The notes under the pieces are model-generated. The model was not told where the DNA came from. It did no database searches and worked only from the letters and a program-made list of their open reading frames with translations. From positions 15,250-79,249 of the forward strand of contig NW_027437467.1 of NCBI RefSeq assembly GCF_964204645.1: a stretch of DNA of 64,000 bases. Direction: 5' to 3'. Shown here piece by piece: positions 1-48,600 of this stretch; within the stretch, counting starts at the first letter, position 1; every line of letters starts with the position of its first letter. Made by a program: the position numbers and the translations under genes. This DNA is from Tubulanus polymorphus. Lineage: Eukaryota; Animalia; Nemertea.

Positions 1-2874
1 ATAGGGGGAATATTCGATACGAAAACGTCTTTTCTCGCGCCGAACGACGTTTTCGCGTCGAAAAGTGCTTTTCCTGACGATTTGAGCGCTTTTACGCATC
101 GGCATTGTCGTTTTTCCGATAGGGGGAATATTCGAAAAGAAAACGTCTTTTCTCGCGCTGAACTACGTTTTCGCGTCGAAAAGTGCTTTTCCTGACGATT
201 TGAGCGCTTTTACGCTTCGACATTGTCGTTTTACCGATAGTGAGAATATTCGATACGAAAACGTCTTTTCTCGCGCCGAACGACGTTTTCGCGTCGAAAA
301 GTGCTTTTCCTGACGATTTGAGCGCTTTTACGCATCGGCATTGTCGTTTTTCCGATAGGGGGAATATTCGATACGAAAACGTCTTTTCTCGCGCCGAACG
401 ACGTTTTCGCGTCGAAAAGTGCTTTTCCTGACGATTTGAGCGCTTTTACGCATCGGCATTGTCGTTTTTCCGATAGGGGGAATATTTGATAAGAAAACGT
501 CTTTTCTCGCGCTGAACTACGTTTTCGCGTCGAAAAGTGCTTTTCCTGACGATTTGAGCGCTTTTACGCATCGACATTGTCGTTTTTCCGATAGGGGGAA
601 TATTCGATACGAAAACGTCTTTTCTCGCGCCGAACGACGTTTTCGCGTCGAAAAGTGCTTTTCCTGACGATTTGAGCGCTTTTACGCATCGGCATTGTCG
701 TTTTTCCGATTGGGGGAATATTCGATACGAAAACGTCTTTTCTCGCGCCGAACGACGTTTTCGCGTCGAAAAGTGCTTTTCCTGACGATTTGAGCGCTTT
801 TACGCATCGACATTGTCGTTTTACCGATAGTGAGAATATTCGATACGAAAACGTCTTTTCTCGCGCCGAACGACGTTTTCGCGTCGAAAAGTGCTTTTCC
901 TGACGATTTGAGCGCTTTTACGCATCGACATTGTCGTTTTACCGATAGTGAGAATATTCGATACGAAAACGTCTTTTCTCGCGCTGAACGACGTTTTCGC
1001 GTCGAAAAGTGCTTTTCCTGACGATTTGAGCGCTTTTACGCATCGGCATTGTCGTTTTTCCGATAGGGGGAATATTCGAAAAGAAAACGTCTTTTCTCGC
1101 GCTGAGCGACGTTTTCGCGTCGAAAAGTGCTTTTCCTGACGATTTGAGCGCTTTTACGCATCGGCATTGTCGTTTTTCCGATAGGGGGAATATTCGAAAA
1201 GAAAACGTCTTTTCTCGCGCTGAGCGACGTTTTCGCGTCGAAAAGTGCTTTTCCTGACGATTTGAGCGCTTTTACGCATCGGCATTGTCGTTTTTCCGAT
1301 AGGGGGAATATTCGAAAAGAAAACGTCTTTTCTCGCGCTGAACTACGTTTTCGCGTCGAAAAGTGCTTTTCCTGACGATTTGAGCGCTTTTACGCATCGG
1401 CATTGTCGTTTTTCCGATAGGGGGAATATTCGATACGAAAACGTCTTTTCTCGCGCCGAACGACGTTTACGGGTCGAAAAGTGCTTTTCCTGACGATTTG
1501 AGCGCTTTTACGCATCGACATTGTCGTTTTACCGATAGGGAGAATATTCGACACGAAAACGTCTTTTCTCGCGCCGAACGACGTTTTCGCGTCGAAAAGT
1601 GCTTTTCCTGACGATTTGAGCGCTTTTACGCATCGGCATTGTCGTTTTTCCGATAGGGGGAATATTCGAAAAGAAAACGTCTTTTCTCGCGCTGAGCGAC
1701 GTTTTCGCGTCGAAAAGTGCTTTTCCTGACGATTTGAGCGCTTTTACGCATCGGCATTGTCGTTTTTCCGATAGGGGGAATATTCGAAAAGAAAACGTCT
1801 TTTCTCGCGCTGAACTACGTTTTCGCGTCGAAAAGTGCTTTTCCTGACGATTTGAGCGCTTTTACGCTTCGACATTGTCGTTTTACCGATAGTGAGAATA
1901 TTCGATACGAAAACGTCTTTTCTCGCGCTGAACGACGTTTTCGCGTCGAAAAGTGCTTTTCCTGACGATTTGAGCGCTTTTACGCATCGACATTGTCGTT
2001 TTTCCGATAGGGGGAATATTGGATAAGAAAACGTCTTTTCTCGCGCGGAACGACGTTTTCGCGTCGAAAAGTGCTTTTCCTGACGATTTGAGCGCTTTTA
2101 CGCATCGACATTGTCGTTTTTCCGATAGGGGGAATATTCGAAAAGAAAACGTCTTTTCTCGCGCTGAGCGACGTTTTCGCGTCGAAAAGTGCTTTTCCTG
2201 ACGATTTGAGCGCTTTTACGCATCGACATTGTCGTTTTACCGATAGTGAGAATATTCGATACGAAAACGTCTTTTCTCGCGCTGAACGACGTTTTCGCGT
2301 CGAAAAGTGCTTTTCCTGACGATTTGAGCGCTTTTACGCATCGGCATTGTCGTTTTTCCGATAGGGGGAATATTCGAAAAGAAAACGTCTTTTCTCGCGC
2401 TGAGCGACGTTTTCGCGTCGAAAAGTGCTTTTCCTGACGATTTGAGCGCTTTTACGCATCGGCATTGTCGTTTTTCCGATAGGGGGAATATTCGAAAAGA
2501 AAACGTCTTTTCTCGCGCTGAGCGACGTTTTCGCGTCGAAAAGTGCTTTTCCTGACGATTTGAGCGCTTTTACGCATCGGCATTGTCGTTTTTCCGATAG
2601 GGGGAATATTCGAAAAGAAAACGTCTTTTCTCGCGCTGAACTACGTTTTCGCGTCGAAAAGTGCTTTTCCTGACGATTTGAGCGCTTTTACGCTTCGACA
2701 TTGTCGTTTTACCGATAGTGAGAATATTCGATACGAAAACGTCTTTTCTCGCGCCGAACGACGTTTTCGCGTCGAAAAGTGCTTTTCCTGACGATTTGAG
2801 CGCTTTTACGCATCGGCATTGTCGTTTTTCCGATAGGGGGAATATTCGATACGAAAACGTCTTTTCTCGCGCCG
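1..2874 (+). repeat. 118-bp tandem satellite array, segment left of the retrotransposon (~24 monomers; continues beyond window start)
   Basis: Monomer ATAGGGGGAATATTCGATACGAAAACGTCTTTTCTCGCGCCGAACGACGTTTTCGCGTCGAAAAGTGCTTTTCCTGACGATTTGAGCGCTTTTACGCATCGGCATTGTCGTTTTTCCG recurs at 1, 119, 237 and so on, with only a few substitutions per copy. Confidence 0.99.
2870..2874 (+). other. Left target-site duplication CGCCG
   Basis: Satellite ...TTCTCG[CGCCG] abuts the LTR TGT; the same 5-mer follows the 3' LTR. Confidence 0.95.
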
Positions 2875-3116
2875 TGTCGAGAACAGGATGTTTATGTAAA
2901 AATGTCAGTAACCATATAGTGTTCACTCCCCCTTAGCCTATGTAGCGAATCATCATATATATTAGCATGCGCATGTGCAGTCGGGACAGGTGGTTAGCCT
3001 GTGTGTGACCGAAATAAACGAGTATCTTATGATCTGTAGACTGAACCCGTCGTGTTTTTAGTCTTTCTCTTCCTTTATCTCCGAACCTGGTCTTCTTTGT
3101 GACTCGCAACGCCACA
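2875..3116 (+). repeat. 5' LTR (242 bp)
   Basis: Starts TGTCGAGAAC, ends AACGCCACA; direct repeat of 8649-8890 with no mismatch found by eye. Confidence 0.97.
2956..2961 (+). promoter_or_regulatory. Candidate LTR TATA element (TATATA)
   Basis: CATATATATTAG about 80 bp into the LTR, upstream of AATAAA, consistent with U3-R-U5 order. Confidence 0.4.
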
Positions 3117-3117
3117 T

Positions 3118-3135
3118 TGGTGCCGTGACCAGGAT
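3118..3135 (+). promoter_or_regulatory. Primer binding site for tRNA-His(GUG)
   Basis: TGGTGCCGTGACCAGGAT, 1 nt after the 5' LTR, is the reverse complement of ATCCTGGTCACGGCA-CCA. That is the invertebrate (Drosophila-type) tRNA-His 3' end as I recall it. Confidence 0.88.
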
Positions 3136-3142
3136 CAGCCGA

Positions 3143-6100
3143 ATGGAGGATACTCAACTGAACCGGTCGACAATCACACGAACTGCAATCAGGCAGAAAG
3201 TTGATGATCTCGTCGTGAAATCGTCAACAATCGTCGAAGATTTTCGAACGACCGAAGACGATGTAGATTTACTAAATATCTACATCGAGCAGATCACAGA
3301 AAAGTTAAGTCGACTAGAGAAGCTAGACTCGACAATCGAGGACCTAACTCCTTTAACGCATCTTTCAGACACGATTCAAGAAGCAGAGGACTTCAGATCT
3401 AGCGTCATCGAAAAACGCGGCCGAATAATCCGATTTGTAGAAAAGGCGAAGCACACAACGCAACCTCATAATTCTTCGATGAACAATTCCGGTGCTTCTG
3501 CGACGCCATTTCGCCCGAACAAGGTAAATCTACCTAAACTTACGCTCGCCAAATTCGACGGCGATTTACTCAAATGGCAGGAATTCATAGACGGATTCAA
3601 TTCAGCGGTCAACGACGACCCGAATCTCGACGACGTCGTTAAGTTTCAATACTTACGCGCACAACTTAACGGCGAAGCTTACAGAACGATCGAGGGTCTG
3701 GCCCTCACCGCGTCGAATGATGCGAACGCACTTCAAGTACTGATAAAAAGGTATGGGCAACCGCAAATCATTATCAGTGCATATATGCGAGCGTTATGGG
3801 AACTTTCGCGACCGACAGAAGACATGCAGAGTCTGATGGAATTTTCGGATAAACTGGAAACATATATCCGAGGACTAAGTGCGCTCGGAAAAAACGAAGA
3901 TAGCTACGGAGATTTGTTGACTCCGATTATCTTAGATAAACTGCCTGGGATGATACGACGACAGATAACGAGGGATAATAACGGCGCGAATTGGAATCTC
4001 CAGTCGTTGCGAGATGCCCTTTCGAGAGAGATAACAGCGTTCCAGGCAGGAGTTTCAGTGTACCCAGAAACTGCTCACCTGGGTACCACGTCAGCGTTCC
4101 ACGTGGGCAATGCGATCAAGAGAAAACCATTAAAATGTACATTTTGTAAAGGGACACATTTCGCGTCAGATTGTGTTCTTGTAACCGAACCAGAGAAACG
4201 CCTGGATATCGTTAAACGTGATAAACTTTGTTTTAATTGCATGGGCACTCATCGTTCTCGGGACTGTAAATCCAAGAACACATGTAAAAAGTGCAGAGGG
4301 AAACATCACACGTTACTATGTGGTTCCTCCCTTACAGAAACGCGCGAGATTTCTACGAAAAATCGACCGCAAAACCCACAAAACGGAAGCAGAAGCGATT
4401 CTCACGATGTAAAAACTGTTCATCAAACGTATGCCGGCGCCCAACAACCACGACCAGATGGGCCCATACTTCTTAAAACAGCTGTGGCGGAGATTTTTTC
4501 GCCATCAACTTCCGCTAATAACCGCTCGAATGGTCGTAAGATAAACATTTTACTGGACGAAGGCAGCCATAGATCGTTTATCACGACGCGAATTTCTGTC
4601 AGCTTAAATCTCCCACATCTGGGCCAAGAGGAAATCAATCTAGCGACGTTCGGAGAACAACTGGCCGGTCGGCGATTACTTCAAAGAACGAACTTTAACA
4701 TCGCGTCATCAGAGGGTTCACCGATACTAATTGAAGCCCTCGTGATACCGACCATCTCCACGCCAATCAGCAATCTTGTAAACAATAAAGTTTTGGATCT
4801 TCCGCATCTGCGAAACCTAACTCTAGCGGAACAGCCATCATCAATAACCGGCGACTTTGATATCGATGTATTAATTGGCGCCGATTACTACTGGTCTATA
4901 GTCGGCGATAATACCGTGAAGGGCTACGGCCCGACTGCCGTTTCATCACGTATAGGGTATCTCTTATCAGGGCCCATACCGAGCCACACCTTACTCACCG
5001 GAGTAAGGAATTCAACCGTTCTCAACGTATCTTGTGTGAGAAATATGGATCTCAATTCGCACCGCGGAGAGGAAGTCTCATTACAATCGTTTTGGGACTT
5101 AGAAACGATCGGCATCAAAGATGACGCTTCTTTGATAAAAAACCGTGGACTTGCTTATTCGGACTATATTAAAACCCATCTAACTGTTGATAGCGATGGA
5201 CGCTATACTGCGAAACTACCTTGGAAAGAAAGCCACGCCCCCTTGCCGGACAACAGACACGTGGCCGAAGCACGGACTCGCAGTATGATACGCCGTTTAT
5301 CCGCAGAAATGAGAACCGTATACGATGCAATAATTGAAGAACAACTGTCGCGTGATTTCATAGAGGATGTAACACATGACATCTCTAGTATCGGACACTA
5401 TTTACCCCACCGAGGAGTAAAAAAGGACTCTACTACCACGCCTCTCAGAATCGTTTTCGACTGCAGTTGTAGAGTCGGAAGCGAACCGTCGTTGAATGAT
5501 TGCTTGGAAACTGGACCCCCGCTCCTAAACGATTTGGTATCTATATTGTTGCGATTTCGATTGTACTCTACAGGAATATCCACCGATATCGAAAAGGCAT
5601 TTTTACAAATAAGACTCCACGAACACGATCGGAAGTATACCAAATTCTTGTGGTTAACCGACCCGAATGATCCAGAAAGCGATTTCAAAGTACTTCAGTT
5701 TAAAAGTATCCTGTTCGGAGCGGTCTCGAGCCCGTTTGTTCTTAACGCCACTGTCAAATCCCACTTAGCCAATTACGATTGCGAAACCGCGGGGAAATTG
5801 GCCGAAAACATATACGTGGATAATATCGTCACTGGAGTAACATCTGAGGACAAAGCGATAAACTTTTATGCACAATCAAACGAAATAATGAATTCTGCAG
5901 GCTTGGCCCTCAGAGCGTGGGCAACTAATTGCCAGAGACTGCGTAATTTGGCGAGCTCGGATGGAGTAGCCGAGTCGAAACCCATCGCGAACGTCCTCGG
6001 GATCCGATGGGACACTCATAACGACACCCTTAGCATCAAGGTAGATGACGGAACGTCCGATCTGGTGACAAAACGTGAGGTAGTTAGCGCGGCGTCGAAG

Positions 6101-8476
6101 TTATATGATCCGCTTGGTTTTCTGGCCCCCGTACAGGTCAGGGCTAAGATGTACATCCAGGAACTCTGGAAACTTAATCTAGGCTGGGACGACCCAGTAC
6201 AGGACGAATCAATGCGAGAAAAATGGTTCTCGATTCGGAATGATTTGTCACGTGCGTCAGAAATTGTGTTATCAAGGAAATACTTAAGTCAACCGCAAAC
6301 CCAGAATTATGAAATACACGTGTTTGCTGATAGTAGCAAAGCAGCATTTGGAGCTGTGGTTTATTTACGAAACCAGCATGATACATCGTTTGTTATGTCT
6401 AAGACACGTGTCGCACCAGTAAAGGAATTAACTATTCCACGACTGGAATTACTTGCTGCTTTGACCGGTTCGAAGCTTATCGATTATGTAACTGAATCGC
6501 TCGGTTCCGAAATCGCTATAACCAAAAAAGTGCTTTGGAGCGATAGTCAGATTGTGCTTTGTTGGTTGAACTCCGATCGAAAGTTACCAGTATTCGTCAG
6601 CAACCGCGTGAAACAGATTAAATCTATCAAAATTGACGAGTACCGCTACTGCCCGACGTCTGATAATCCGGCAGACATACTATCGCGTGGAATCGACTCC
6701 GAGAAACTACGGCATTCTAATTTGTGGTGGTTTGGCCCCGAATGGCTGAAACATGGCGACTGGCCCGTGGATAAATTATACGCTGACACTAGCACAGTTA
6801 ATATCCTCCACATCAACGATCCTCAACCCGGGCAGGTTGAAGACGCGGAGGACGAACGGATTGGTTTGGTAGAAATAATCGACATTGAACGATTCATAGA
6901 GTTGGGATCATTATTACGTGTCACCGCTTACGTTTTCTTGTTTGTCGCGAAACTTCAACGCCAGACAGATCGGTCCGCCGAGGATCTGACGCCGGATGAT
7001 ATAGCCCGAGCTAGAACGGCGTGGATTAAAGCTGTGCAAAATGCTAATTATTCGAATGAAATTTTCGTGCTGCAGGGTAATCATGCAAAATCGCGAGCGC
7101 CCCTGACAAAACAGCTACGGTTGTTTATTGGCGATGATAGTTTGTTGAGAGTTGGAGGGAGACTCCATAACGCCCCGATTGATTATGGCGCGAAATTCCC
7201 AATATTACTACCCCCGAAAGGGCGATTTACCGAGTTAACTGTGATTGATGCTCACGCGAGAGCACTTCATTTGGGTACAGAATCAACGATTAACCGTATT
7301 CGACAAACGTATTGGATTCAAAGTATCAGGAAAGTCGTTAAATCTCTGTTGCGAAAATGTTACAATTGCAAAATCACTAGTGGTCAGCCATACCCACTAC
7401 CGGACCCTGCACCGTTGCAGAAGAGCAGGCTGACAGATGCCCCTCCCTTTACCGTAACGGGAGTGGATTTCACCGGACATTTGTTCGTGAGAGATAACAA
7501 CAGAGAAGCGAAAGCGTATATTATCTTGTTTACATGTGCGAACACACGTGCCGTTCATCTCGAGGTTGTTTCTGATATGTCGTGTGCCACATTTCTTCTC
7601 GCCTTCCGACGTTTCGCCGCACGTCGATCCTTACCCCAAAAGTTGATAAGTGATAATGGATCGGCATTCGTGGCCGCGGCGGGAGAAATAAAGAAGCTTC
7701 TCGATATTCATTCGGTTCGAAAATACATGCTCGAGAAAAATGTTGAATGGGTATTTATACCAAAGGCCGCCCCATGGCATGGTGGCTTTTGGGAACGTTT
7801 AGTTGGACTTACGAAACAAGTTCTGAAACGTGTTTTAGTCCGCGCATACATATCGATGTCTGAACTTATTACGCTCGTCGCGGAAATCGAAATGGTGATC
7901 AACAACCGCCCGCTTACGTATTTGTCCGATGACGTAACTGATCCAGAACCGCTAACACCATCGCACCTCCTTCACGGACGAGTTATGTCGAATCTACCGC
8001 ACCTATCTGATACCGATGCTATCAGTGATCCGGAGTATGGTGTTTCGATAAACACACAAAACCTCCAGAAACGCGCACAAAGAGTGATGGAACTCTTCGA
8101 ACATTTTCGGTCTCGTTGGACCAACGAATACGTTATTGCGCTACGTGAACGACATCTGTCCATGCGAAATAATGGCAGAACAAGCGAGATTCGATCAGGA
8201 GACGTTGTACTCGTACACGACGACCAAAAACGTAGAATTAACTGGAAGCTTGCTATCGTAACGAAACTGAACTACGGGAACGACGGCGCAGTTCGTTCAG
8301 CAGAAATTAGAATGGGCACTACAAATACTAGCCGACCTATAAATAAACTGTTCCCGCTTGAAATTAACACCGATATGGACTTTAAAGAGCCTGGCCCCGT
8401 TATAGCCTCTGATCCGCGACCCGTGCGAAACGCAGCGCGAAAGGCTCGTGCAAAAATCGTCGAATGTTTGAAATAG
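3143..8476 (+). CDS. gag-pol: Gag-Pol polyprotein, 1777 aa from first ATG: Gag (DUF1759-like ~3530-4040; three zinc knuckles 4136-4321), aspartic protease (LLDEGS, D at 4556), RT (DIEKAF; YVDN 5813-5824), RNase H (FADSS, RLEL, WSDS, NPAD), integrase (HHCC; GVDF, SDNG, WERL) and DUF5641-like C-terminus
   Basis: Uninterrupted ORF. The track start at 3125 is a GTG inside the PBS; the first in-frame ATG is 3143. Motifs read directly from the translation. Confidence 0.95.
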   Translation: MEDTQLNRSTITRTAIRQKVDDLVVKSSTIVEDFRTTEDDVDLLNIYIEQITEKLSRLEKLDSTIEDLTPLTHLSDTIQEAEDFRSSVIEKRGRIIRFVEKAKHTTQPHNSSMNNSGASATPFRPNKVNLPKLTLAKFDGDLLKWQEFIDGFNSAVNDDPNLDDVVKFQYLRAQLNGEAYRTIEGLALTASNDANALQVLIKRYGQPQIIISAYMRALWELSRPTEDMQSLMEFSDKLETYIRGLSALGKNEDSYGDLLTPIILDKLPGMIRRQITRDNNGANWNLQSLRDALSREITAFQAGVSVYPETAHLGTTSAFHVGNAIKRKPLKCTFCKGTHFASDCVLVTEPEKRLDIVKRDKLCFNCMGTHRSRDCKSKNTCKKCRGKHHTLLCGSSLTETREISTKNRPQNPQNGSRSDSHDVKTVHQTYAGAQQPRPDGPILLKTAVAEIFSPSTSANNRSNGRKINILLDEGSHRSFITTRISVSLNLPHLGQEEINLATFGEQLAGRRLLQRTNFNIASSEGSPILIEALVIPTISTPISNLVNNKVLDLPHLRNLTLAEQPSSITGDFDIDVLIGADYYWSIVGDNTVKGYGPTAVSSRIGYLLSGPIPSHTLLTGVRNSTVLNVSCVRNMDLNSHRGEEVSLQSFWDLETIGIKDDASLIKNRGLAYSDYIKTHLTVDSDGRYTAKLPWKESHAPLPDNRHVAEARTRSMIRRLSAEMRTVYDAIIEEQLSRDFIEDVTHDISSIGHYLPHRGVKKDSTTTPLRIVFDCSCRVGSEPSLNDCLETGPPLLNDLVSILLRFRLYSTGISTDIEKAFLQIRLHEHDRKYTKFLWLTDPNDPESDFKVLQFKSILFGAVSSPFVLNATVKSHLANYDCETAGKLAENIYVDNIVTGVTSEDKAINFYAQSNEIMNSAGLALRAWATNCQRLRNLASSDGVAESKPIANVLGIRWDTHNDTLSIKVDDGTSDLVTKREVVSAASKLYDPLGFLAPVQVRAKMYIQELWKLNLGWDDPVQDESMREKWFSIRNDLSRASEIVLSRKYLSQPQTQNYEIHVFADSSKAAFGAVVYLRNQHDTSFVMSKTRVAPVKELTIPRLELLAALTGSKLIDYVTESLGSEIAITKKVLWSDSQIVLCWLNSDRKLPVFVSNRVKQIKSIKIDEYRYCPTSDNPADILSRGIDSEKLRHSNLWWFGPEWLKHGDWPVDKLYADTSTVNILHINDPQPGQVEDAEDERIGLVEIIDIERFIELGSLLRVTAYVFLFVAKLQRQTDRSAEDLTPDDIARARTAWIKAVQNANYSNEIFVLQGNHAKSRAPLTKQLRLFIGDDSLLRVGGRLHNAPIDYGAKFPILLPPKGRFTELTVIDAHARALHLGTESTINRIRQTYWIQSIRKVVKSLLRKCYNCKITSGQPYPLPDPAPLQKSRLTDAPPFTVTGVDFTGHLFVRDNNREAKAYIILFTCANTRAVHLEVVSDMSCATFLLAFRRFAARRSLPQKLISDNGSAFVAAAGEIKKLLDIHSVRKYMLEKNVEWVFIPKAAPWHGGFWERLVGLTKQVLKRVLVRAYISMSELITLVAEIEMVINNRPLTYLSDDVTDPEPLTPSHLLHGRVMSNLPHLSDTDAISDPEYGVSINTQNLQKRAQRVMELFEHFRSRWTNEYVIALRERHLSMRNNGRTSEIRSGDVVLVHDDQKRRINWKLAIVTKLNYGNDGAVRSAEIRMGTTNTSRPINKLFPLEINTDMDFKEPGPVIASDPRPVRNAARKARAKIVECLK

Positions 8477-8636
8477 TTGCATAATAGTTACTATCAATGC
8501 CTGAATTTACTATTTAATCGTATTTTGAATTAACGTTTAGTTGTTTATTGATTTCCATAAGCTTTATTTACTTAATCCATTGTAATGATTAGTCATATAT
8601 CTCTCCGTTCTTACTCTTTATTTGTTTACCTTTGTC

Positions 8637-8648
8637 GCCCCGGAGAAA
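8637..8648 (+). promoter_or_regulatory. Putative polypurine tract region (GCCCCGGAGAAA) immediately 5' of the 3' LTR
   Basis: Position abutting the LTR; the purine run is only 7 nt (GGAGAAA, 8642-8648) and is preceded by a T-rich 3' UTR. Confidence 0.6.
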
Positions 8649-8890
8649 TGTCGAGAACAGGATGTTTATGTAAAAATGTCAGTAACCATATAGTGTTCAC
8701 TCCCCCTTAGCCTATGTAGCGAATCATCATATATATTAGCATGCGCATGTGCAGTCGGGACAGGTGGTTAGCCTGTGTGTGACCGAAATAAACGAGTATC
8801 TTATGATCTGTAGACTGAACCCGTCGTGTTTTTAGTCTTTCTCTTCCTTTATCTCCGAACCTGGTCTTCTTTGTGACTCGCAACGCCACA
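8649..8890 (+). repeat. 3' LTR (242 bp)
   Basis: Identical to 2875-3116; preceded by GGAGAAA and followed by the TSD. Confidence 0.97.
8787..8792 (+). terminator. Polyadenylation signal AATAAA in the 3' LTR (copy at 3013-3018 in the 5' LTR)
   Basis: Single canonical AATAAA followed downstream by a GT/T-rich tract (CGTGTTTTTAGTCTTTCTC). Confidence 0.65.
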
Positions 8891-8895
8891 CGCCG
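8891..8895 (+). other. Right target-site duplication CGCCG
   Basis: ACA[CGCCG]AACGACG; removing the element plus one copy restores a normal monomer. Confidence 0.95.
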
Positions 8896-45600: not shown

Positions 45601-48600
45601 AAGTGCTTTTCCTGACGATTTGAGCGCTTTTACGCATCGGCATTGTCGTTTTTCCGATAGGGGGAATATTCGATACGAAAACGTCTTTTCTCGCGCTGAA
45701 CGACGTTTTCGCGTCGAAAAGTGCTTTTCCTGGCGATTTGAGCGCTTTTACGCATCGACATTGTCGTTTTACCGATAGGGAGAATATTCGACACGAAAAC
45801 GTCTTTTCTCGCGCCGAACGACGTTTTCGCGTCGAAAAGTGCTTTTCCTGACGATTTGAGCGCTTTTACGCATCGACATTGTCGTTTTACCGATAGGGAG
45901 AATATTCGACACGAAAACGTCTTTTCTCGCGCCGAACGACGTTTTCGCGTCGAAAAGTGCTTTTCCTGACGATTTGAGCGCTTTTACGCATCGGCATTGT
46001 CGTTTTTCCGATAGGGGGAATATTCGATACGAAAACGTCTTTTCTCGCGTCGAAAAGTGCTTTTCCTGACGATTTGAGCGCTTTTACGCATCGGCATTGT
46101 CGTTTTTCCGATAGGGGGAATATTCGATACGAAAACGTCTTTTCTCGCGCCGAACGACGTTTTCGCGTCGAAAAGTGCTTTTCCTGACGATTTGAGCGCT
46201 TTTACGCATCGACATTGTCGTTTTACCGATAGGGAGAATATTCGACACGAAAACGTCTTTTCTCGCGCTGAGCGACGTTTTCGCGTCAAAAAGTGCTTTT
46301 CCTGACGATTTGAGCGCTTTTACGCATCGGCATTGTCGTTTTTCCGATAGGGGGAATATCCGAAAAGAAAACGTCTTTTCTCGCGCTGAGCGACGTTTTC
46401 GCGTCGAAAATTGCTTTTCCTGACGATTTGAGCGCTTTTACGCATCGACATTGTCGTTTTTCCGATAGGGGGAATATTCGATAAGAAAACGTCTTTTCTC
46501 GCGCTGAACTACGTTTTCGCGTCGAAAAGTGCTTTTCCTGACGATTTGAGCGCTTTTACGCATCGACATTGTCGTTTTACCGATAGGGAGAATATTCGAC
46601 ACGAAAACGTCTTTTCTCGCGCTAAACGACGTTTTCGCGTCGAAAAGTGCTTTTCCTGACGATTTGAGCGCTTTTACGCATCGACATTGTCGTTTTACCG
46701 ATAGGGAGAATATTCGACACGAAAACGTCTTTTCTCGCGCTTAGCGACGTTTTCGCGTCGAAAAGTGCTTTTCCTGACGATTTGAGCGCTTTTACGCATC
46801 GGCATTGTCGTTTTTCCGATAGGGGGAATATTCGAAAAGAAAACGTCTTTTCTCGCGCAGAGCGACGTTTTCGCGTCGAAAAGTGCTTTTCCTGACGATT
46901 TGAGCGCTTTTACGCATCGGCATTGTCGTTTTTCCGATAGGGGGAATATTCGATACGAAAACGTCTTTTCTCGCGCCGAACGACGTTTTCGCGTCGAAAA
47001 GTGCTTTTCCTGACGATTTGAGCGCTTTAACGCATCGACATTGTCGTTTTACCGATAGGGAGAATATTCGACACGAAAACGTCTTTTCTCGCGCTGAGCG
47101 ACGTTTTCGCGTCAAAAAGTGCTTTTCCTGACGATTTGAGCGCTTTTACGCATCGGCATTGTCGTTTTTCCGATAGGGGGAATATCCGAAAAGAAAACGT
47201 CTTTTCTCGCGCTGAGCGACGTTTTCGCGTCGAAAAGTGCTTTTCCTGACGATTTGAGCGCTTTTACGCATCGACATTGTCGTTTTACCGATAGTGAGAA
47301 TATTCGATACGAAAACGTCTTTTCTCGCGCTGAACGACGTTTTCGCGTCGAAAAGTGCTTTTCCTGACGATTTGAGTGCTTTTACGCATCGACATTGTCG
47401 TTTTTCCGATAGGGGGAATATTGGATAAGAAAACGTCTTTTCTCGCGCTGAACTACGTTTTCGCGTCGAAAAGTGCTTTTCCTGACGATTTGAGCGCTTT
47501 TACGCATCGACATTGTCGTTTTACCGATAGGGAGAATATTCGACACGAATACGTCTTTTCTCGCGCTAAACGACGTTTTCGCGTCGAAAAGTGCTTTTCC
47601 TGACGATTTGAGCGCTTTTACGCATCGACATTGTCGTTTTACCGATAGGGAGAATATTCGACACGAAAACGTCTTTTCTCGCGCTGAGCGACGTTTTCGC
47701 GTCGAAAAGTGCTTTTCCTGACGATTTGAGCGCTTTTACGCATCGGCATTGTCGTTTTTCCGATAGGGGGAATATTCGAAAAGAAAACGTCTTTTCTCGC
47801 GCAGAGCGACGTTTTCGCGTCGAAAAGTGCTTTTCCTGACGATTTGAGCGCTTTTACGCATCGGCATTGTCGTTTTTCCGATAGGGGGAATATTCGATAA
47901 GAAAACGTCTTTTCTCGCGCTGAACGACGTTTTCGCGTCGAAAAGTGCTTTTCCTGACGATTTGAGCGCTTTTACGCATCGGCATTGTCGTTTTTCCGAT
48001 AGGAAGAATATTCAATACGAAAACGTCTTTTCTGGCGCCGAACGACGTTTTCGCGTCGAAAAGTGCTTTTCCTGACGATTTGAGCGCTTTTACGCATCGA
48101 CATTGTCGTTTTACCGATAGGGAGAATATTCGACACGAAAACGTCTTTTCTCGCTCTGAACGACGTTTTCGCGTCGAAAAGTGCTTTTCCTGACGATTTG
48201 AGCGCTTTTACGCATCGGCATTGTCGTTTTTCCGATAGGGGGAATATTCGAAAAGAAAACGTCTTTTCTCGCGCAGAGCGACGTTTTCGCGTCGAAAAGT
48301 GCTTTTCCTGACGATTTGAGCGCTTTTACGCATCGACATTGTCGTTTTACCGATAGGGGGAATATTCGACGCGAAAACGTCTTTTCTCGCTCTCAACGAC
48401 GTTTTCGCGTCGAAAAGTGCTTTTCCTGACGATTTGAGCGCTTTTACGCATCGGCATTGTCGTTTTTCCGATAGGGGGAATATTCGATACGAAAACGTCT
48501 TTTCTCGCGCTGAACGACGTTTTCGCGTCGAAAAGTGCTTTTCCCTGACGATTTGAGCGCTTTTACGCATCGACATTGTCGTTTTTCCGATAGGGGGAAT

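Follow-up and report, generated by a model that had tools for sequence, protein, structure and literature searches.

In this study, we analysed a 64-kb stretch of DNA (the window) that forms the final 64 kb of C50, an unplaced contig of 79,249 bp from the nemertean Tubulanus polymorphus. Near its start the window carries a BEL/Pao retrotransposon of 6,016 bp (2875-8890) embedded in a tandem array of 118-bp satellite. The two long terminal repeats (LTRs) of the element, both on the forward strand as are all its features, are 242 bp each and 100% identical (5' LTR, 2875-3116; 3' LTR, 8649-8890); they start with TGT and end with ACA. The element is bracketed by a perfect 5-bp target-site duplication, CGCCG, with the left copy within a satellite monomer (2870-2874) and the right copy at 8891-8895. 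Directly behind the 5' LTR there is an 18-nt primer-binding site (3117-3134), the perfect complement of the 3' end of the host tRNA-His(GTG) including its CCA. The gene for this tRNA exists in nine identical copies whose 3' end matches the primer-binding site, and ARAGORN confirmed one of them. A single gag-pol open reading frame (ORF) of 1,777 amino acids (aa) extends without interruption between the ATG at 3143 and the stop at 8476. A TATA-like run (2956-2964) and an AATAAA (3013-3018) in the 5' LTR, together with a short polypurine tract, GGAGAAA (8642-8648), adjoining the 3' LTR, were assigned their roles from sequence only.

Both flanks of the element consisted of the 118-bp satellite alone (1-2872 and 8891-64000, 92-95% matches in Tandem Repeats Finder). 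Apart from the duplication, the left array occupies 1-2869 and the right array 8896-64000, the latter holding ~467 monomers without further insertion. The phase of the satellite was unbroken across the element, with a repeat spacing of 6139, which equals 6016 + 5 + 118. With the element and one of the two CGCCG copies taken out, the joined flanks restored one normal monomer, which is a CCG variant of the consensus TCTCGCGCTGAACG. The original prediction had described an intact and very young BEL/Pao element with identical LTRs, a perfect duplication, an uninterrupted 1,777-aa ORF and 118-bp satellite on both sides. This description was borne out in its features and their positions, and only the start of the ORF had to be corrected, to the ATG at 3143. 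The window element is an intact, recently inserted and autonomous-looking copy of the BEL/Pao group (Belpaoviridae).

Pfam matches in the gag-pol protein occurred in the order DUF1759 (gag, aa 138-277), DUF1758 (protease-like, with the motif LLDEGS, aa 460-609), RVT_1 (reverse transcriptase, with the motif YVDN, aa 796-923), Peptidase_A17 (aa 976-1135, E 3e-47), Integrase_H2C2 (aa 1369-1411), the rve core (aa 1439-1532) and DUF5641 (aa 1644-1739). Three CCHC knuckles lie in gag (aa 332-393), and the HHCC and DD35E motifs are present in the integrase. This predicted order of seven families is the BEL/Pao architecture, and we assigned the element to BEL/Pao because of this order, including Peptidase_A17, in combination with the LTR ends, the tRNA primer site and the 5-bp duplication. 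The YVDN and D-E-G motifs look odd at first sight; they are the norm among 120 relatives, and a degenerate protease or reverse transcriptase was thus ruled out. Beyond DUF5641, Pfam recognised nothing further in the polyprotein, neither a chromodomain nor another targeting module of the integrase C-terminus such as a CR motif. DUF5641 itself is common to most relatives and is followed by just 38 residues. In RefSeq, the nemertean BEL/Pao elements are labelled as uncharacterised proteins.

A single insertion cannot show a preference, as the original prediction had itself conceded, and we agree. We therefore took a census of the family by an LTR search of the whole assembly, in which all 29 candidates were scored and their flanks inspected. 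Our results revealed 13 independent insertions, namely ten two-LTR copies (one each on C50, C35, C1, C3, C8, C11 and C28 and three on C2) and three solo LTRs (on C5, C6 and C7). Twelve of the 13 insertions had their own perfect 5-bp duplication, and their flanks were all different and shared no common motif; for this reason they were counted as independent events. The solo LTR on C6 lacked a target duplication. Between the two LTRs of a copy there were no differences in four copies, one in two, two in one, three in two and four in one. An ORF of 1,774-1,777 aa was kept in four copies, while the rest had stops, frameshifts, internal deletions or a nested insertion. The copies were 98.7-99.4% identical to the window copy. 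An integrase search led back to the same ten copies (97-100% identity), with the next relative in the genome at no more than 55%, indicating that the family is discrete. The protein cluster of the family held just six copies, all from the Tubulanus polymorphus assembly, and added no insertion sites. Regarding the neighbourhood of single copies, the one on C28 carries a nested insertion of ~6.7 kb and is adjoined by a fragment of a Penelope-like element with reverse transcriptase and GIY-YIG parts (C28, ~14.5-15.4 kb).

Illumina reads of a second individual (run X5) gave an independent estimate of the copy number. By read depth, 11-15 element copies were present against ten in the assembly, and therefore no large pool of copies is hidden in unassembled satellite. 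Seven sites are private to the window copy. At five of them the window allele was carried by 3.5-21% of the second individual's reads, while the window alleles G at 3719 (0 of 88 reads) and C at 7377 (0 of 80 reads) were absent. It appears from these alleles that the second individual has copies of the same sub-lineage as the window copy, though perhaps not the exact copy. The two absent alleles hint at either an insertion polymorphism or mutation after insertion.

The satellite was counted with a conserved 30-nt pattern that allowed up to 3 mismatches and was calibrated on the window; it detected 91-97% of the monomers, both in the window and in the two variant arrays described below. In the genome the pattern had 12,061 matches, corresponding to ~1.4-1.5 Mb or 0.53% of the assembly, and the reversed control pattern had none. 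In the reads of the second individual, the satellite (window 2775-2874) reached a depth of ~257,000, equal to 1.57% of the letters. The comparison of 1.57% of reads with 0.53% of the assembly indicated that the satellite is under-assembled about three-fold. The genome size measured by flow cytometry, 313-358 Mb against an assembly of 268 Mb, is consistent with under-assembly (PMC8468679). At least five chromosome-scale contigs have one interior array locus each, at 15.70-15.76 Mb of the 32.1 Mb of C1, 16.78-16.85 Mb of the 27.8 Mb of C3, 13.52-13.59 Mb of C4, 6.83 Mb of C9 and 7.33-7.68 Mb of C12, and several small contigs hold arrays too; on C2, C5-C8, C10 and C11 no array was located. The satellite is centromere-like by its chromosomal position only. 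In the right part of the window (8891-64000), the 236-bp and 354-bp periods scored about as high as, or higher than, the period of 118 bp, which suggests a dimer or trimer higher-order structure. The call of the 118-bp array breaks at ~46,045, beside an irregularity with a 100-bp period at 45945-46154.

Three of the 13 insertions, those on C50, C35 and C1, were flanked by the satellite. The other ten (77%) had no satellite within 2 kb. One of these is the C28 copy, whose unplaced contig does bear satellite. The ten also include three of the four identical-LTR copies and three of the four that keep a full ORF. The C50 copy is within the homogeneous main variant of the satellite. The C35 copy lies within a variant array that is ~81% like the main variant and has a dimer period of 246 bp, and the C1 copy (15.75 Mb) sits among ~15 monomers ~80% like the main variant, which form a 1.8-kb block inside an array of 92-94%. 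The three insertions entered the monomer at positions ~42, 63 and 106 and share one orientation relative to it. We also considered whether the three satellite copies were one insertion that had been copied together with the array, and this was ruled out, as they differ in target duplication, in position within the monomer and in array variant. Insertion guided by homology was likewise ruled out, since the element has no satellite-like sequence. The satellite is not the main or exclusive target of the family. With 3 of 13 insertions and one of four identical-LTR copies in the satellite, the family does not fit the definition of a centromere specialist.

However, the frequency in the satellite was above expectation. 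Three of 13 insertions against a satellite share of 0.56% gave P = 4.8e-5, and against a share of 1.6% P = 1.0e-3, an excess of 15- to 40-fold. The window locus had been flagged for lying in satellite, and the fair test is therefore the one in which this copy is discounted; the remaining 2 of 12 insertions gave P = 2e-3 to 1.5e-2. Two controls were used. In a very young gypsy-like family, none of ~19 sampled insertions had satellite within 1.5 kb (Fisher P 0.058). Among the other BEL/Pao integrase loci of the genome, whose satellite status was judged by coordinates alone, none of 90 was in the five mapped arrays, and 3 of 90 were on small contigs versus 3 of 10 for the window family (Fisher P 0.013). 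The family-specific excess in the satellite is therefore modest but likely real in the statistical sense. The centrophilic reading in the original prediction stood only in part. The census against the satellite share upheld a modest excess, whereas targeting found no backing in a family with 10 of 13 insertions elsewhere and no extra domain.

How could such an excess arise? One explanation is a real integration bias, in which the integrase or a host factor bound to it prefers 118-bp satellite chromatin (CENP-A chromatin or heterochromatin), making the family a weakly centrophilic BEL/Pao. The excess of 3 of 13 insertions, the empty gypsy-like control and the contrast with the other BEL/Pao loci all speak for it, as does the single orientation that the three satellite copies share. 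In addition, the satellite fraction did not rise with LTR divergence (one of four identical-LTR copies, one of the four oldest two-LTR copies), and this lack of an age trend would not be predicted by a slow retention filter. However, most insertions are elsewhere, the positions in the monomer differ, no chromodomain or other added module was recognised, and two of the three satellite copies sit in monomers just ~80% like the main variant. Furthermore, the P value that is left once the window copy is removed is unremarkable among the hundreds of transposable-element families of the genome, and de novo BEL-Pao insertions in Drosophila favour euchromatin and gene ends (PMC10018349). We regard such a bias as possible, while leaning against it. 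In its most specific form, as a real and family-specific bias toward centromere-like 118-bp satellite chromatin that operates without a recognisable targeting domain, we consider it unlikely.

The excess could also reflect tolerance together with chance. Integration would then be near random, insertions in the gene-poor and little-recombining satellite would remain unpurged, and the excess would partly be sampling noise and ascertainment. For example, selection has enriched the inherited LTR insertions of Drosophila, BEL-Pao among them, in heterochromatin, where de novo insertions show no such enrichment (PMC10018349). In a 2026 preprint covering 325 genomes, transposons of all classes were reported as invaders of satellite centromeres, Bel-Pao being among those named for the Metazoa (10.64898/2026.09.17.752431). 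It also fits that, in Tubulanus polymorphus, BEL/Pao loci generally gather in the central chromosome regions. However, the equally young control families were without satellite copies, and the satellite fraction did not rise with LTR divergence; a filter of at least 15-fold acting before a single LTR mutation is a strong demand. To us the chances of tolerance plus chance being the right explanation are evenly balanced.

Irrespective of how the excess arose, we are confident that the window family is an ordinary, recently transposing BEL/Pao family which integrates genome-wide without a recognisable target sequence and which is over-represented 15- to 40-fold in the satellite. In the mechanism that we propose for this ordinary family, the host tRNA-His would prime reverse transcription, and the DDE integrase would join the DNA copy into one satellite monomer through a 5-bp staggered cut. 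Three points weigh against this reading. With LTRs of 242 bp, zero differences bound the age only loosely. Given the roughly three-fold under-assembly of the satellite, the assembly may lack a few further copies embedded in it. Finally, no element sequence was found in the single possible RNA run of the species, which is not proof of silence.

The gypsy-like family that served as control also touches the window family directly. A 7.9-kb LTR retrotransposon of that family is nested in the solo LTR on C5 (C5:10216455-10224359). It has identical LTRs of 192 bp, a 4-bp duplication ATTA, a gag with Retrotrans_gag and zf-CCHC matches, and a 277-aa ORF at its 3' side with a faint, sub-threshold GDSL-lipase-like match. 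The LTR matches of its family number at least 40, many of them in identical pairs, and are clustered near the chromosome centres. As for BEL/Pao in general, a first look found 876 candidate integrase loci genome-wide, concentrated in the central parts of the chromosomes, and open frames of 1,812-1,837 aa occur in many copies of several further families. BEL/Pao elements are a large and apparently active part of the Tubulanus polymorphus genome. With its tRNA-His primer and 5-bp duplication, the anatomy described here is a useful guide to the annotation of BEL/Pao elements in nemerteans.

At present, the locus offers a clean and dated example of a known phenomenon, the presence of young LTR elements in satellite arrays. 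If the integration bias were true, the family would be the first among BEL/Pao elements, and the first among spiralian retrotransposons, for which a preference for satellite DNA is resolved to the base, and the convergent colonisation of centromeres and satellites would extend to a third LTR superfamily, in a little-studied phylum. The family, small and countable with its 13 insertions, would then lend itself to the question of how satellite chromatin is found by an integrase that lacks a chromodomain.

CRM and ATHILA (Ty3/gypsy), Tal1/ALE (Ty1/copia) and the non-LTR G2/Jockey-3 have most of their copies in centromeres, and in CRM and Tal1 a determinant lies in the C-terminal part of the integrase. 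The window element resembles these systems as a young and intact element in a chromosome-central satellite, with an excess over the genome share of that satellite. Unlike them, the window family has 23% of its copies in a satellite that is centromere-like by position only, and in contrast to CRM and Tal1 no targeting determinant was found in its integrase by Pfam. Within its own group, it resembles the BEL/Pao elements of marine invertebrates, such as the other families of Tubulanus polymorphus and those of Lineus longissimus, in its domain order, its single gag-pol ORF of ~1,800 aa, its YVDN and D-E-G motifs, its short LTRs and its 5-bp duplication, at an identity of 45-54% from reverse transcriptase to integrase. 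It differs from the other BEL/Pao loci of its genome in the higher share of its copies on satellite-bearing contigs.

The original prediction knew of no well-characterised satellite-targeting BEL/Pao. Taken more broadly, the premise that BEL/Pao is unknown in centromeric satellites is dated, since the preprint lists Bel-Pao among the frequent interrupters of metazoan centromere arrays (10.64898/2026.09.17.752431); the narrower statement held, as no characterisation of a BEL/Pao family that targets satellite came up in our literature search. One precedent is Achilles, a BEL-Pao element of Bactrocera oleae, which hybridises to all centromeric regions and to ~22 euchromatic bands, and a fragment of which sits between arrays of a centromeric satellite (PMC4580426). 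Like Achilles, the window family is dispersed with some copies in satellite, in centromeric repeats in the case of Achilles. However, Achilles was placed by cytological mapping, without any claim by its authors of an association with the satellite, whereas the junctions of the window family were resolved to the base and counted. The preprint describes the same phenomenon at the survey level, with Bel-Pao frequent among the non-satellite interruptions of animal centromere arrays and with LTR elements younger inside arrays than elsewhere, and its text is without Tubulanus or Nemertea (10.64898/2026.09.17.752431); here, in contrast, a single BEL/Pao family was dissected.

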